Sequence record: MH494197.1
Strand: one strand, 5' to 3'
DNA: 64,000 nucleotides
Positions within the stretch are counted from its first letter, which is position 1, and every line of letters begins with the position of its first letter. Below are positions 11,570-44,569 of the stretch, one piece after another. Below the pieces are notes generated by a model. It did not search any database and was not told the DNA's origin. It worked only from the letters and a program-made list of their open reading frames with translations. The translations under genes and the position numbers were made by a program.

Positions 11570-11814
11570 TTAATTCCAGCGACCTTCTTTAAGACCTTCA
11601 ACGAAACCAGTACAGCCACGGAACGTAAACATCGTTTACGAAAATTTGTGGAACCTGTCGTACTGGCTCACCACATAGTTCAGATAGTTTAGCACCATCA
11701 ATACCAGCGGTAACATATCGATAAACTCCATATCAAATTTGTTATTTTCACATACTGCTTTAGCAGTGTCGCAGAATTACAACCAGTAGTGCGACCATAA
11801 ATTTTAACTTTCAT
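11570..11814 (-). CDS. Glutaredoxin (NrdH/NrdC-like); frameshifted
   Basis: MKVKIYGRTTGCNSCDTAKAVC (CxxC motif), EPVRQVPQIF. Confidence 0.8.
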
Positions 11815-11863
11815 TTCTTTTCCTTTATTTCGTTGAAACATCGTAACAGCCTTTATTATACTG

Positions 11864-12244
11864 TTACATTCGTTCAGTCAAATACTTTTGACAATCTAGT
11901 ACATCAATGTACATGAACTTATCCAATTCTGGGTGACTTCTACCATATCTGTTTGTGTAAGTACTTTTACACTCCAACTCTTCTGGTATAGGCTTATCTT
12001 TGGCTGTATAGAAAAATAAAACTAAACGTTTCCCTTTCTATACGATACATCACCAAGAAACAGAAGATCATCTTCATCGATTTCATATCCTGTCTCTTCG
12101 TAGCATTCACGTACAGCAGCCTCTTTAAATGTTTCTGTACCTTCAGTTTTACCTTTAGGTAAGTCCCAGTGATTCTGTCCGTGTTGTATGCCCGATAAGT
12201 ATCTGACCATCACGATAAAATATTATACCACAGCTATAACGCAT
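11864..12244 (-). CDS. Nudix hydrolase; frameshifted
   Basis: HWDLPKGKTEGTETFKEAAVRECYEETG Nudix box; C-terminal HPELDKF. Confidence 0.88.
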
Positions 12245-23248: not shown

Positions 23249-23424
23249 AAATCTCTCCTTAGAGTTATTCTATGGTATTTAGTTAATAATAAAGGTAACT
23301 TCAGGATTCATTTCTGAAACTGCATTTCTCTTACTTCTATTCCATAGTACTCTATTGTTATATAATGAAGAATCACAAATTATAAGTAAGCAATTCCTTA
23401 ATCTACTTACAGTACTTTGATTAC

Positions 23425-23706
23425 TTAAATCAGTTTCTGTAACAAAAATACATTATCAGGAACTTCTACAGGAATTGATTTATCAAAGAAGAAAACTACA
23501 ATAGGTCTGTTTGTATGAACTAAATTAATAAAGTCTAAAATACTGTTATAAAATTCAGTTCCTTTGTTTAAACTTAATGGATCTTTGATTCTCTTCAAAT
23601 AGGTCTGAACCAAATTATGATCGCTTTTGATTTGATACTCAAAATATTCTTTGAATAACATTTGTGTTAATTCAGATGTATTGGATATTTTCGTTGTGTT
23701 ACTCAT
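23425..23706 (-). CDS. Hypothetical protein
   Basis: Intact 93-aa ORF. Confidence 0.5.
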   Translation of the reverse strand: MSNTTKISNTSELTQMLFKEYFEYQIKSDHNLVQTYLKRIKDPLSLNKGTEFYNSILDFINLVHTNRPIVVFFFDKSIPVEVPDNVFLLQKLI

Positions 23707-23843
23707 TCACTTCGTTCTCTCGTAACTCAAGAAGTCACTACGTTTACTTCGTAAACTAGTTCCTTCTGAAAATGATAATGTACTTTAAAAGCTTGACGGG
23801 ATTTGTTGAGGACTATTTCATCCCGCAGGAATGAAGGTAATAA

Positions 23844-24352
23844 AAAGAGACAATTAAGTCTCTCTTGACGATGATGGCATCGGATATTATCGAATTGAAT
23901 TTCTCAAATTTTGGACGGATCTTTCCTGTACCAAAATTTAGAGAGCGAAAGCGGGTTGCTCGGTTTCTCTCTATCGCAGTCATATGCAACGGTCGCTGGT
24001 CTTTTCATCAACAGCACTCAGTACTAAACTCTATTCGATCAAAGTAGTACCTGTTCTCAAATTTTGGACGCAACTTTCTTGTAAAATCGCGTCCACAATC
24101 CTTGAACTCCCTTAGCAAATTCGTAAGGTGCGAACCTTATACATCTATCTAGGAACTCTCTGTGTGCTTATTGGAGTTCTTTATACAGCCGTGTCGCCGT
24201 GATTCGTGGTCTTATCTCGTGTTTGTTTGATTGCCAGTACTCTAACAGGTTTCTTTTGCTGTTCGCTACAACGGTAAAGCTCATCTATCCTTTACATTTT
24301 CAAGAGAAGTAGGTTCTCATTATCCATTTTTCAATGTCCGTTGTCATTTTAC
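23844..24352 (-). ncRNA. Candidate large structured non-coding RNA (about 500 nt)
   Basis: No credible ORF; promoter at 24360-24387, terminator-like hairpin at 23844-23866, at least eight local stems; GC visibly above flanking genes. Confidence 0.55.
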
Positions 24353-24359
24353 AATATAC

Positions 24360-24387
24360 ATTATATCACTAGGATGTATTATGTCCC
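24360..24387 (-). promoter_or_regulatory. Sigma70-like promoter GGGACA-N16-TATAAT with extended -10
   Basis: Same architecture at 44536-44563, 49888-49915 and 53398-53425. Confidence 0.6.
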
Positions 24388-24784
24388 GTTACATGTATAC
24401 CTTTTTCAAATCCTTGGAACAACGGTCAAAATTGTGTTGATGAATTCGACATCCTCTTTGATATTGGAGTCTATAGCATCATTCTCGTTTCTTGTTGTGT
24501 TCCTGTATTTGTGTTCAGGGTGATTGTATACCACCTTGACTACATTATTTAGGTCTACAAAAATGACGATTTTTGCGTATAGGAAGCCTGAAGCTTGATG
24601 AGTTTACCATCGTTTTGTAGATTAGTCTTGTGAATTAGTTCTTCAATACCATCTAAATGGCTATAGCTATCCTGTTCTTTGACGAATGTAACAGTTACCA
24701 GTACTGACTTCTCATCTCCAAAGTCAGAGATATTTTTAACAGCACTGATGATTTCTAAGTTTGAAAAATCTAATTCTTTTAGCA

Positions 24785-25140
24785 TTACAAATATTTCCAC
24801 AAAGTTCGATAAGTGATAATTTCTTCTCTGGTAACAGAAACTTCATAGCACTTAACACCATCAGTTTCATTTCTGAATGGTTCTGCTGGTCTATCTTCTG
24901 TTAAACCTCGTTCATACGTACAATGATAATATTTGTTCGTGTTCATGTCAAGAAAAACTAGATCAAATTCTTCTGTCCATCGTCTATGCCCTTTACTTTC
25001 ATTACTAATGATTTTGTACTTAACATCGGGATTGAATGATTCAGTACTGTCATCCCATGTACCATAGTCAGTATATTCATCATCTTCATCTAACTCTGCC
25101 AGATGCCACATTAACTGTGGTAAAAGATTTTAGATTTCAT
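24785..25140 (-). CDS. Hypothetical protein
   Basis: ORF 24785..25111 plus a frameshifted start near 25140. Confidence 0.5.
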
Positions 25141-38929: not shown

Positions 38930-39063
38930 TTTACTTTCCTTGTATTTTGAAATCATCTGGGGTGAAGTTATTTAACATCACCAGACACCATTATAGCGTC
39001 AGAACAGGGTATTTCTATTGATCTATATCAAGGAAAGGTCACATTGCTTTTATTTGCACAAAT

Positions 39064-39086
39064 AGAAAAAGCACCTCTAGGTGCTT
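39064..39086 (-). terminator. Intrinsic terminator
   Basis: AAAGCACC-TAGA-GGTGCTTTTT. Confidence 0.75.
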
Positions 39087-40015
39087 TAAAGTACTGCTAA
39101 TATAAAACTGCCCAAATTAGCAGTACTACATTGGTTGGAGCGGCAAAAACATATATGCAGCAATAGCACTGCATCCGATTACAAGTTTAGCTAGTCTCAT
39201 CTGGACTCCATGTAATAGTCACAGTAAATGTGCCTTCTTGGAAACCAAACTCATCTTGTGGGATTTGACCAGCTAATGGGTTAAATCTTGAATCGAATGC
39301 TTCATGTACGTCTCGCTGAATATCATAGAGACTTTCACCATCGTATTCTTTTTAAAGATTTCATTCTGCATTTATACGTAACGACCCTCGTATTCTGTCT
39401 GGATATCCATCAAATAGATCAATGAATTGGTTTAACGCATAAGTACTGATGAATGGATTATTCTTTGCAAGTTCTATGCGTTTTTCAAAATCCATTAATA
39501 TAATCTCTGGTCTACTGAAATTTCCTTTACGTCTATATGTTAGTAAACGCTCGGTATGACCACTGAACTGAAATTCAAAATATGTTGATGCTGCATAATC
39601 ACTTCCATCAGGAACCGGAATTGAAAAATCAACATTGAACTTATTACCAAATGCGAAAAATACCCACCATCTTCGTGTGGTATAGTTTTATCATTTAGAT
39701 GGAAATCTATTTCATCACCTAATATATCAAATATCTTGATACTTAGAGACATAAAATCATCGGCTAACATTTTTTTACCTTATTTTATAGCTCTACAATA
39801 GAAATGAATAATATACGGAAATATAGGATTATCGACGTATGTTGCAAAATTAGCTATGGTAATTTTTTATAGTACGAGTTATGTATGGATATAATGGTTT
39901 GTGGGTCGATTGCTTCTCTATTTGATAGTTCAACAAAACGACCACACTTCATATAAGCCTTACCATAATAATCGTAAGTTATCTCATATTGATCCATTTA
40001 TTCTGGTTCTTTGTT

Positions 40016-41135: not shown

Positions 41136-44095
41136 TTACAGATGAACTCCACCCGTGACGTTCTTCCCAAACTGTTTTGCTGGATTGTAAATTGATGATG
41201 TAGAAATGACTGCATGGATCTTATTAAACGTATCGTCTGCTTCTTGTTGGGTGTAATCACCATAAGTGTTTAGCACATTTTTGTATAGTTCATCGATTGC
41301 CTCATCATAAGTATCACCACCGCAATCTAACTCATAATCATGTGCTTGTACCCATTCATCATCTTGCTCAATGTACATAGGTGAGATGAATTCTACCCAA
41401 AATTGTGTCTTTGTATTCAGAGCTTTAAATGATTCAATGCGGTTTGTGATTGGACACACATCATGTGGTTCGATATCAATCCTTGGGGAACCATATCTCT
41501 GTTGATGAATTTAGGATGACCCAAAATCCACCAGTACTTTTCAGATGTAGTCATAGTAATCTCCAATTAAAAGTACTGCCACTATAACAGTACTGATATT
41601 AAATGTAACGTTTCTTTTATAATCATACCCTACTGCTTTGTAAAAGTCAAACAAAGAAGCATGTTCAAATGTAGGTAATAGATCATATGGGTGCTGATAG
41701 TTCGCAATACCAACAATAGCCATCATTGATTCAGCCGTTCTGGAATTTTCACTATCCCATTCATCTAAACGCCAAAGTGAGCAAAGTACCTCGCGTTCAT
41801 GTTGCTTACCCAGAAAGAATTCAGCTTCACGGTCACGAAATGCACCTGCACTGATAGTACTTTTGTACCAGTCTTCTTCACCATAAGCTGGCATACGGAT
41901 AATATGTTTTCTTGAGCTTCACCAAAGCGGTGAAGAAATGCCACATAATCACTCATAATTTATAACCCATTACAGGTTTGGTATGATCCGGTTCGTAAGA
42001 CTTTTCAGTACTGAACCCTCTGAAATTACCACGACGGCTTCGGACAAGCCATCCCTTCTACACCGTGCTTACCCTGAACCTTTCCGCAGTTTTTGCATTT
42101 GTATCCAATAACTTCTTTCATTGTGCATCCTTTGGAATAGTGTTAAGGCGTGTACGGTTTACAATCTTCCTGCACATGAGATTAAGATCTTGCCCATGAC
42201 GCATCTCATGGCAAGCATACAATGTGCCATCATAGTTAAGTTTAGTCAAATTCTGGCGAATGAACTCTGCATCAGCCTCCTGAACTTTAGGTGCACAGCC
42301 TGTTACTAACATCATGAGTGCTGAAACAATTGCAATAGAAATAAATTTCATAATTTAATCACCTATACATAAGTACTCGATTGATGGTTTACCATTAACT
42401 AACACAATACCAGTGTGAGTTAATACACAGTTCGTTGGTGCTTCTTCAAATACTGATACGTAAATGTATGAACCATTACTAACTGAACAAGATAATACCA
42501 TAAGAACGGCGATTAGTACAAGTAAAATTTTCATATGAACCTACTTTTTGATTTATGTAATGCAATTTGTACTCGCGTAATGAACTCACGCTCTACTTCA
42601 TCTGAATTAACACCATCATATTGTGTTTTGAATAGTTCCATAGCTTTGATAGCCATCTGAACTGAAAGATCAGCAATACTTTCAGTACTGGTACTTTCAA
42701 ATACATTTTGAGGCTTAGTTCACCATCATCAATACATTCTTTTGGTTTGTTGATTTCTGGTACTTGGATGTATCGCAATGCTTTGTATTCTGCTTTGGTC
42801 AGATTCCCAGTCCATCTTGGTTCATTGAACAAGTCATGCATTGTAATGCCAGCTTCACCCATTAGGTGTACTAACTCTTCATTTCGGCGAATATGCTTTT
42901 CTTCATCTTTGAAATTTTTGTAAGTGTAAGCACAACGCATGATAGCCAAACGTACTTCACCACTTTTAGTAATTGTATACGTATGAATTGCATTATCGTA
43001 GTCACTTTCCCATTGTTGACCCGCATATTCGTACCAAAGGTCATTTGTCTCCCAACGGAGCATTTTACCTTCTAGTAGCTCGTCAATCATTTTAGCCATG
43101 TTACCATGATATTCACAACTGGTAATATTAAATCCACCATTGTACTTTGCAAGGTATAGAATCTTTTCTTGTGATACATTTTTCATTACATGTAATCCTT
43201 GATGTATTTTAGCAGTTTAGATTTCTCTTCGGTACTTAATGATTTCTTGTTCATCAAGTGTTTCATTTCTTGACGTTCAATTTCTTCACATATTTTAGAT
43301 TCAGCTTCAATTCGTGCATGGTATTCTTCGTCAGTTTCTTCTCTGGTCCAAATTACATTGTATCCATGAAAACCGCCGTAACCACCGTCTGGTGTAAGAC
43401 TAATGTGACCGTTATATTCAGCACGATACTTATTAAGAGTGTCAATAAAGGTATCAATGCCACACGGTTCAATTTCAATATAACCAATCACTACAGTAAC
43501 TTCAATTTTGTTCATAAAGTTCACCTATAAAATTAGGAGCATTAGCTCCTTTGTATTGATGTTTACGTTTTGTACTGTATTTCCAGCCAGTACTGTGTCT
43601 TGTTCTGATATCGTCCCAATACGATGGTAATGAACGCATCTTACGTCTTCCACGTATTTCAGGTTCCCCTCATCCTTCAGTACTGCACAAGCCATACGAC
43701 GCTCTTGTTGGGTCTTAGGACGTTTGTATCGGGAGTGGTTATGTTTGTACATATACGAACGCTTGTGTCGCCATTCAGTGTCACGAGCATTTCGTTTATG
43801 CTCCCAGTACTCATTATAGAGTATCATGTATTCACCCATAAGTAAATCAGGAGATACAAGTAATCCTTTTTCAGTACAAAGATAATAACCTACGAACTTT
43901 TCTGGATACATTTCGTAATAGAAACGGTTCTTCCAAAATGTTTCACGATTCTTTTGTTGAATTCAGCTAAATCGAATTTCATCTTACTGTGGAAACGGTC
44001 TATACCATCATGTTCCGCAATGTACTCTAACAGATTATCAATAATCTCAACTTTACCTGAATCATGGTACAACGTAAATGTTTGGTCAAAAACAT
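41136..44095 (-). CDS. Array of about nine small hypothetical genes, including a lipoprotein (42118..42351, LVTG-C)
   Basis: Tightly packed minus-strand ORFs with SD sites; no assignable catalytic motifs. Confidence 0.45.
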
Positions 44096-44317
44096 ATATT
44101 TCTCCTTTAAGTTAAACTAACCTAATGGAATGTCATTCTTCCTTTACTACATGTTCTCATGGTTTAATCCTTTTGTCAATATCTAGAAAGAAAAATCCCT
44201 GCCAAAAGACAGGGATGAAAAACTGAAATAACACATGGAGTTCTTTTAAATTAATAAAAGTATTATTATTCTTATGAAAGTATTTATCATGAACTCCAGT
44301 TTATTGCTTCAAATGAA

Positions 44318-44505
44318 TCAATAACCTTTTTGTGCTACTAGCTCACGGTATTGAGCACGAGTTAGAACACCTTGTTTACGTAGAGCTTGAAGACCTGTTA
44401 GGGTTTCTGCTTTACGTAGTTCGAAAATACGTTGTTCTTTAGATTGAATAACTTTAACTTTCTTAACTTTTGCTACTGGTTCTTTTTCTTAGGTTGCTTT
44501 GCCAT
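44318..44505 (-). CDS. Small highly basic protein (about 62 aa); frameshifted
   Basis: MAKQPKKKEPVAKVKKVKVIQSKEQRIFELRKAETLTGLQALRKQGVLTRAQYRELVAQKGY; SD AGGAG and own promoter at 44536-44563. Confidence 0.55.
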
Positions 44506-44569
44506 GAGTATTTCTCCTTTGTTGTTAACAATATTATTATATCATGTATGGGACGAATGTCCCACATTA

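Follow-up and report, generated by a model that had tools for sequence, protein, structure and literature searches.

Evidence for a large, multiply pseudoknotted non-coding RNA of an undescribed family in RaK2/GAP32/121Q-like jumbo phages

What is encoded between two minus-strand genes of Escherichia phage CMSTMSU (Asteriusvirus), at about positions 23707-24391, where no protein is evident? The stretch of DNA analysed here, hereafter the window, comprises bases 1-64000 of record MH494197.1, and window coordinates are those of the record. A first-pass annotation of the window had proposed an undescribed large structured non-coding RNA (ncRNA) with its own promoter at this locus, a proposal that is supported by strand-specific covariation among homologues, by the lack of a coding signal and by the lack of any match in Rfam. 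The locus almost certainly holds a structured RNA gene on the minus strand. The data establish a multiply pseudoknotted RNA that is under strong purifying selection and is shared with, or borrowed by, integrative islands of enterobacteria. The interpretation favoured here, with moderate confidence, is a stand-alone gene for a stable, trans-acting ncRNA of an undescribed family, running from approximately 24353 to at least 23792 on the minus strand.

Searches by blastn with the core of the element (approximately 23794-24317) identified homologues in 72-73 phage records. These were exclusively RaK2/GAP32/121Q-like jumbo myoviruses, with hosts assigned to Escherichia, Klebsiella, Salmonella, Erwinia, Yersinia, Cronobacter, Pectobacterium, Serratia and "Xanthomonas". 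Identity of the core across genera was 65-70% and the loci were syntenic across genera. Between one and five copies were detectable per phage record, typically three to five. The whole genome of phage TH47 (352 kb) carries four dispersed copies at 49.5, 146, 262 and 346 kb, which share one strand and have 70-73% identity with the window copy; no second copy was found within the 64-kb window. A pattern taken from the most conserved block was used to fetch further loci, yielding 31 from IMG/VR, 60 from metagenomes and seven from bacterial genome assemblies. Subsequent nhmmer analysis gave 115 matches, of which 78 were unique and full-length, the window copy being matched over 24316-23793 with E = 9e-121. 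No homologue was found in plasmids, only two of 5426 complete E. coli genomes carried one, and matches among GenBank phages were confined to the same jumbo phages, with none in a temperate phage. In a tree of the RNA the paralogues formed old clades, and the island RNAs were nested within the phage diversity at two separate places.

Base pairing was scored on an alignment (A1) of 50 sequences with mutual identity below 93%, for 70 base pairs in 15 helices. Canonical pairs accounted for 97.3% of 3354 cells, compared with 80.3 ± 0.4% after shuffling, and none of 500 shuffles reached the observed value. Sliding the partners by one to three columns reduced the canonical share to 40-47%, the number of pairs with changes on both sides from 49 of 70 to 15-21, the number of double-change cells from 550 to 42-86 and the covariation score from 0.481 to 0.05-0.10. 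The collection of homologues and a test of covariation had been recommended by the first-pass annotation; many homologues were found and, by our own scoring of the 50-sequence alignment, compensatory base changes were abundant. Cells with G.U pairs numbered 278 as against 24 with A.C, and the same helices read on the opposite strand were 89.7% canonical rather than 97.3%. The folded molecule is consequently the minus-strand transcript, as G.U greatly exceeds A.C and the other strand pairs less well. The window sequence folded at -146.5 kcal/mol compared with -122.6 ± 6.7 for shuffled sequences (z = -3.6). Many invariant unpaired nucleotides and a number of optional peripheral hairpins are further features of the family.

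RNAalifold performed poorly on the raw 78-sequence alignment because variable inserts were misaligned, and misaligned inserts likewise caused four of the elements described below (P1, P7, the outer part of P10 and P11) to score badly in the first mapping, after which they were remapped or trimmed. Two candidates were left out of the model, namely an RNAalifold pairing of UAAGGGAG with the 3' tail, which several clades break when A1 is inspected by eye, and a hairpin around CCGAUG...CAUCGUC whose register is ambiguous.

A coding function is not indicated by any of the measures applied. The lengths of the 50 aligned RNAs were evenly spread modulo three (17, 17 and 16 sequences), column entropy had no lag-3 periodicity, no long open reading frame (ORF) was conserved and the median longest stop-free run was 76 codons. 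In relatives whose flanking genes are intact, an ORF is likewise missing from this place. Existing annotations leave the region blank or overlay it with short "hypothetical proteins".

Nor could the RNA be assigned to a described family. Comparison of the whole window with Rfam 15 using Infernal cmscan, the check put forward by the first-pass annotation, gave no match at the gathering score; relaxing the threshold to E up to 10 added nothing but noise. Intact copies from GAP32, 7t3, RaK2 and one bacterial island likewise matched no family (for 7t3, at E up to 5), and permissive matches consisted of noise and terminator look-alikes only; as a positive control, the signal recognition particle RNA in one of the relative and island loci was correctly detected. 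ARAGORN identified no transfer RNA (tRNA) and no transfer-messenger RNA (tmRNA) in the window; TH47 has four tRNAs, all at least 14 kb from any copy of the RNA. The covariance models for RNase P gave no match at E up to 10. By eye only, AAACAGAGCAACCCGCUU resembles the CR-IV region of RNase P. A group I intron was rejected: Rfam gave no match, the flanking genes in TH47 are separate complete ORFs and the element has its own promoter. The absence of tRNA, tmRNA, RNase P or intron hallmarks noted in the first-pass annotation is thus in agreement with ARAGORN and Rfam. No description of the family was found in the literature open to searching, including jumbo-phage genome papers and recent large-scale ncRNA surveys, and its characteristic motifs were unmatched in that literature. 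The evidence supports an undescribed RNA family without an Rfam entry, which is a member of neither ROOL nor GOLLD and is merely the same sort of thing.

The architecture of the RNA is described in the direction of its transcription, all features lying on the minus strand. A sigma-70-type promoter is located at 24360..24387, where it had been placed previously, and consists of a -35-like GGGACA, a 16-nucleotide (nt) spacer and an extended -10 element TGaTATAAT, amounting to 10 of 12 matches. The same kind of promoter, with TGnTATAAT or TGnTATACT and usually a -35-like GGGACA or TGAAAC, precedes at least 69 of the 78 homologues, and from it the start of transcription is predicted at approximately 24353. 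In RaK2 (L004:1221-2117), the RNA copy directly follows a gene annotated as an RNA polymerase sigma factor, which may be coincidental. The core of the RNA (23792..24353, approximately 560 nt), as delimited by nhmmer, A1, covariation and folding, extends from the 5' motif through a GC-rich hairpin to a conserved tail, CAACAAAUCCCGUCAAG.

The 5' domain is closed by a pseudoknot, PK3 (24268..24344), in which the 5'-terminal ACAACGG (24344-24338) pairs with CCGUUGU (24274-24268) in the apical loop of helix P3. At least 13 different complementary versions occur at this position, with at least 6 bp in 38 of the 50 sequences; examples are ACAACGG/CCGUUGU in the window, UCAGUGG/CCACUGA in phage A4, CUGAUUGA/UCAAUCAG in GAP32 and AUGUUGG/CCAACAU in RaK2. 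In the window and in many other copies a few nucleotides separate the predicted start from PK3, while GAP32-type and clade-D copies have approximately 30 nt or more, or a leader hairpin, in between. A terminator-like hairpin with a U-tract was observed between the -10 box and the 5' motif of clade-D copies (L011:35113-35190, L012, L081 and L034) and could be an attenuator or a 5' stabiliser. Enclosed by PK3 are the P1 hairpin CAUU-GAAA-AAUG (24336-24325) and P2a/P2 (24312-24285; 94.9% paired, six of eight pairs covarying), which bears the conserved loop GAAAAUGUA at 24301-24293. A three-way junction follows at 24265..24285, GAUGA-[P3: GCU...AGC]-GAA, with invariant flanking purines and a P3 stem that is 100% paired, two of its three pairs covarying. 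P4 joins ACAGC (24262-24258) to GCUGU (24189-24185) and is 100% paired; together with P5, which joins CUGU (24248-24245) to ACGG (24200-24197) and is 99.5% paired, it encloses a variable insert.

The central region begins with the P6 hairpin (24179-24153), in which GAACUCC pairs with AGAGUUC and five of five pairs covary, and continues with the P7 hairpin UAAGGU-UCGC-ACCUUA (24139-24124); in A1 a conserved GAUAGAUGUAUAAGG lies between the two, within 24124..24179. The invariant UAAGGGAG (24114-24107) includes AAGGGA in 50 of 50 sequences. Insert 1 (24094-24066; GGACGC...GCGUCC) is an optional peripheral hairpin present in a subset of copies only. An internal direct repeat of 30 nt, ending ..CGUCCAAAAUUUGAGAA, at 24054-24083 and 23901-23930 represents two copies of this optional module, inserts 1 and 2, which has a conserved apical loop UACAAnAUAG and occurs zero, one or two times per family member. 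The P10 hairpin (24051-24020) presents the loop UCGAAU (24038-24033), which forms pseudoknot PK2 with AUUCGA (23895-23890) approximately 140 nt downstream, 100% paired with six of six pairs covarying.

The 3' core (23890..24051), to which P10 and PK2 belong, further comprises P11 (24016-23994), PK1, P13, P14 and P15. In PK1, GUUGC (23990-23986) pairs with GCAAC (23959-23955) inside the P14 loop; the pairing is 100% and includes one compensatory pair with a clean C-G to U-A switch (CG in 44 sequences, UA in six). P13 is formed by UGCG (23978-23975) and is 99% paired, its partner at 23897-23896 being truncated in the window by a 2-nt deletion. P14 pairs GAGAG (23971-23967) with CUUUC (23951-23947) at 100%, and P15 with insert 2, whose helix is AAATTTTGG/CCAAAATTT, occupies 23944-23902. 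The long-range or pseudoknot pairings therefore total three (PK1, PK2 and PK3) within at least 15 helices overall. Ten helices had been named in the first-pass annotation, six of which are borne out by the homologues: ACAACGG/CCGTTGT, now PK3; GAACTC/GAGTTC (P6), TAAGGT/ACCTTA (P7) and GGACGC/GCGTCC (insert 1); AAATTTTGG/CCAAAATTT (insert 2); and the terminator-like hairpin described below (P16). The remaining four, GAGAA/TTCTC, GTAAAG/CTTTAC, AACAG/CTGTT and AGAGAG/CTCTCT, clash with the covarying P2/P2a, P3, P4/P5 and P14/P15 and were discarded.

The RNA had been thought to end at the hairpin AAGAGAGAC-UUAAUU-GUCUCUUUUU (P16, 23842..23866), but conserved structure runs on to 23792 and, in relatives, approximately 150 nt further. 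P16 is optional, being gapped in 21-25 of the 50 sequences (approximately 45% of copies), and five of five pairs covary where it is present. It is followed in all aligned copies by a GC-rich hairpin, P17 (23835-23817), which is 99.6% paired with changes from C-G to U.G only, the window copy being 5 nt shorter than its counterparts in near-identical relatives. The tail CAACAAAUCCCGUCAAG (23808-23792; family consensus CAACAAAUCYCGUCA) is universal in the aligned copies, and the P17 and tail motifs are each unique within the window. A second conserved module, located 40-90 nt further downstream, consists of GAAUUGA, hairpin A, closed by GAAUU/AAUUC with the apical loop GAACGNAGUGA, and hairpin B. 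The same two-hairpin shape was present in all 28 phage and island copies examined (28/28), with a median z of -3.0. The window retains a degenerate remnant of this module at 23683..23756, part of which coincides with the beginning of the downstream ORF (ATG at 23706). Because P17, the tail and the second module follow P16, the conserved unit is approximately 0.7 kb long. At the locus between the genes for endonuclease VII and a baseplate hub protein, a strong bidirectional terminator lies approximately 50 nt beyond the second module. TATAAAT-like sequences resembling T4 late promoters were observed after the tail in many phage copies (among them L002:2992-3010, L003 and L005) and not in the island copies examined; they may provide downstream genes with a late promoter of their own.

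The genes around the RNA locus are on the minus strand, and the record itself is flagged UNVERIFIED_ORG. The locus had been described as the largest non-coding gap. With an ORF threshold of 65 aa, no ORF-free stretch of the window exceeds 23707-24554 (848 nt), but at 80 aa it ranks only third, and its portion 24392-24554 represents the end of the upstream gene, broken by frameshifting. Comparison by tblastn with the near-identical TH47 shows that both flanking genes are frameshifted in CMSTMSU: the upstream gene (24392..24800, minus strand; 137 aa in TH47) is spread over three reading frames and the downstream gene (23282..23706, minus strand; 142 aa in TH47) over two. The true non-coding interval is accordingly approximately 23707-24391, and the frameshifts together with the flag suggest that indel errors are frequent in the CMSTMSU sequence. 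Relative to the 98-99% identical copies of TH47 and 121Q, the window copy of the RNA has three small deletions: 2 nt from the 3' strand of P13 (23896-23897), one U of the U-tract after P16 (approximately 23847) and 5 nt of P17 (approximately 23826). As both neighbouring genes are also frameshifted, these deletions are most simply explained by sequencing errors and probably do not represent real decay. Further ORF-poor stretches of the window were noted at 38957-39539, 2288-2970, 43912-44569 and 11571-12187, the first of which appears by eye to be a coding sequence interrupted by frameshifts rather than a second RNA gene.

Beyond the window, most copies of the RNA are situated upstream of co-directional genes. 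The downstream ORFs fall into at least 12 unrelated clusters and differ between paralogous loci, and at the endonuclease VII/baseplate hub locus the RNA is flanked by opposite-strand genes only. In bacterial assemblies and metagenome contigs, one copy of the RNA is found in each of a few small integrated enterobacterial islands (L063:3733-14625; L117:4959-15303; L056; L053); Enterobacter chinensis 170198 is one carrier strain. Their backbone comprises a serine or tyrosine integrase, the RNA, a converging cI-like repressor, a cro-like gene, a membrane protein and LprI. The integrase and the RNA are separated by 0.4-0.7 kb in most islands, with three extra ORFs between them in L063. The membrane protein (224-327 aa) belongs to a family of approximately 286 aa that had no match in Pfam, PHROG or PADLOC. 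Defence cargo is variable; for instance, one island encodes KwaB of the Kiwa system, and an E. coli island next to ffs carries PDC-M45, a candidate system. A scan of island ORFs revealed no recognisable replicase.

That the RNA is stand-alone and acts in trans is considered fairly probable. A stable trans-acting RNA is suggested by the locked 5' end, the GC-rich 3' hairpin, the independence of neighbouring genes and the terminator that closes the unit at one locus. Under this interpretation, host RNA polymerase would make the RNA early in infection, and its locked 5' end and GC-rich 3' hairpin would make it long-lived. The folded molecule would then act in trans as a scaffold or decoy, with its invariant unpaired surfaces binding a protein or complex of host or phage origin, a mode that would differ from base-pairing to one mRNA or from regulation of a neighbouring gene. 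The binding of a partner in this manner is put forward only tentatively.

Several points weigh against this interpretation or the evidence for it. The helices were partly picked on the same alignment on which they were later scored, and the search pattern through which most homologues were obtained leaves part of PK1 and P14 no freedom to vary; the covarying PK1 partner sat in an unconstrained gap of that pattern. The start, end and stability of the RNA are all predictions from sequence, and the position of the 3' end or ends is ambiguous, given that P16 lies inside the conserved unit in approximately 55% of copies. No island protein has a phage homologue, spurious antisense ORFs over the RNA being the only ones shared. 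No similarity to PA5oct ncRNA002 or ncRNA004, the two compared here among the published ncRNAs of a related phage discussed below, was detectable with nhmmer. Finally, the dispersed and co-oriented copies, the early promoters, the AT-rich sequence downstream and the position in the backbone of islands whose scanned ORFs include no recognisable replicase would also suit an origin or primer RNA.

A replication origin with a structured primer RNA, in which the transcript would stay hybridised near the 3' tail or the AT-rich stretch and prime the leading strand, is accordingly the main alternative, as it was in the first-pass annotation, although it is judged unlikely. The four copies in TH47 are spread over 352 kb in one orientation, the promoters are early and of the type used by host RNA polymerase, and the 50 nt past the tail average 23-31% G+C, although the phage genome itself has approximately 34%. 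ColE1 RNA II and the R-loop RNAs of T4 oriF and oriG are primer or origin transcripts of this type, and the present RNA resembles them as a transcript of approximately 0.5 kb made by host RNA polymerase, at dispersed sites in a T4-related genome and with AT-rich DNA following. It differs in that its fold is far more complex, with three pseudoknots and with terminator hairpins within or after the unit, and in that no antisense regulator is evident. Known primer RNAs need far less than three pseudoknots and invariant loops; moreover, in approximately 55% of copies the putative priming region is preceded by a terminator-like hairpin, and a strong terminator closes the unit at the endonuclease VII/baseplate hub locus. 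A turning point in GC skew was found near copy C only and not near A, B or D, which is a weak test for T4-like phages, and GC skew was set aside as uninformative. Applied to the islands, the same explanation holds that the element lets an infecting jumbo phage replicate, and perhaps package, them, and this extension is given the same low probability. Kreuzer and Alberts reportedly observed that plasmids carrying T4 origins replicate and are packaged on infection by T4. Such an arrangement would fit the position of the element beside the integrase in a backbone where no replicase was recognised among the scanned ORFs, and the occurrence of island RNAs in two clades of the phage tree, as though they followed particular phages.

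A catalytic RNA, that is, a new large ribozyme processing itself or acting on another substrate, is less probable still. Points in its favour are the compact, multiply pseudoknotted core with many invariant unpaired purines and the three-way junction, CAGAUGA-[stem]-GAA, which is superficially hammerhead-like; the purines of the junction could form tandem sheared G.A pairs beside a covarying stem, as in junctions of the hammerhead or k-junction type. In the hammerhead, however, the core CUGANGA and GAAA are unpaired and A6 is invariant, whereas here CAG is helix-paired with CUG and covaries, and the position equivalent to A6 is A or U. A hammerhead was rejected on these grounds and because no Rfam hammerhead model matched and no cleavage-site context was found; more generally, no Rfam ribozyme model matches and no candidate cleavage site or substrate is evident.

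A cis-acting leader that controls downstream genes by processive antitermination, attenuation or translational control would account for the position of most copies before co-directional genes, the terminator-like hairpin within the unit, the U-tract hairpin just past the promoter of clade-D copies and the abutment of the second module on the ribosome-binding site of the next gene in many phage loci. It is nevertheless improbable, because the genes downstream belong to many unrelated families, the neighbours at one locus are on the opposite strand and the island copies converge on the cI-like gene. That the locus is a protein gene in decay or with sequencing errors, or no more than a DNA repeat or mobile element, can be dismissed as highly improbable despite the indel-rich CMSTMSU record with its two frameshifted flanking genes and the label 'repeat_region' given in one record to part of a copy, since relatives with intact neighbours are ORF-less, lengths modulo three are equal without 3-nt periodicity, and compensatory changes, asymmetric tolerance of G.U and synteny across genera are all present.

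Large structured RNAs of bacteria and phages form a short list that includes RNase P, tmRNA, introns, OLE, GOLLD, ROOL, raiA and few others. ROOL, a model of which is included in Rfam, typically occurs in Firmicutes or rumen prophages, often near tRNA genes. The jumbo-phage RNA, in contrast, matches no Rfam model in sequence or structure and is found in Enterobacterales and their jumbo myoviruses, in several diverged copies per genome and without adjacent tRNA genes. It shares with ROOL and GOLLD a length of 0.5-0.8 kb, an elaborate structure without coding capacity, an unassigned function, a gene of its own and an occurrence in both phages and integrated elements. ROOL and GOLLD are large ornate RNAs of phages and prophages for which cryo-electron microscopy (cryo-EM) has revealed homo-oligomeric, RNA-only assemblies (PMC12286853).

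The nearest published counterparts, which set a precedent by analogy only, are the ncRNAs of the related Pseudomonas jumbo phage PA5oct. RNA sequencing of this phage defined four putative long ncRNAs, ncRNA001-004, which are ORF-less and 236-619 nt in length, and two of the four account for 2-5% of phage reads and are very abundant throughout infection (PMC7318152). The 3' end of ncRNA004 (L119:960-1035), UUCCUUCCCAAACGGGGAGGAAAUCUUCUCCGCCCGAAUAUCA, loosely resembles by eye a GC hairpin followed by the tail, without homology by nhmmer.

The occurrence of multiple copies in the phages and the place of the RNA in the backbone of integrase-bearing defence islands suggest a role at the interface between phage, host and mobile element. 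A more specific proposal, considered speculative and rather doubtful, is that RaK2-like jumbo phages and small defence-bearing islands are in conflict and that this RNA is an element common to both sides. The phage would need the RNA early, whether as a scaffold, ribozyme or origin RNA, and the island copy, beside an integrase and a cI/cro switch, would serve to detect, commandeer or titrate whatever phage machinery recognises it. Jumbo-phage annotations overlook this RNA gene, either leaving its locus blank or scattering small "hypothetical proteins" over it. The family is tractable, with phages that grow on laboratory E. coli (the host of Sharanji is K-12 MG1655, and 121Q and PBECO4 have been cultured), rich covariation and a size suited to cryo-EM. 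Each of the large structured RNAs listed above opened new biology; if the proposed conflict is real, it would represent an RNA-mimicry route to satellite-like parasitism or defence, involving a new class of functionally unprecedented, large, triple-pseudoknotted RNA.

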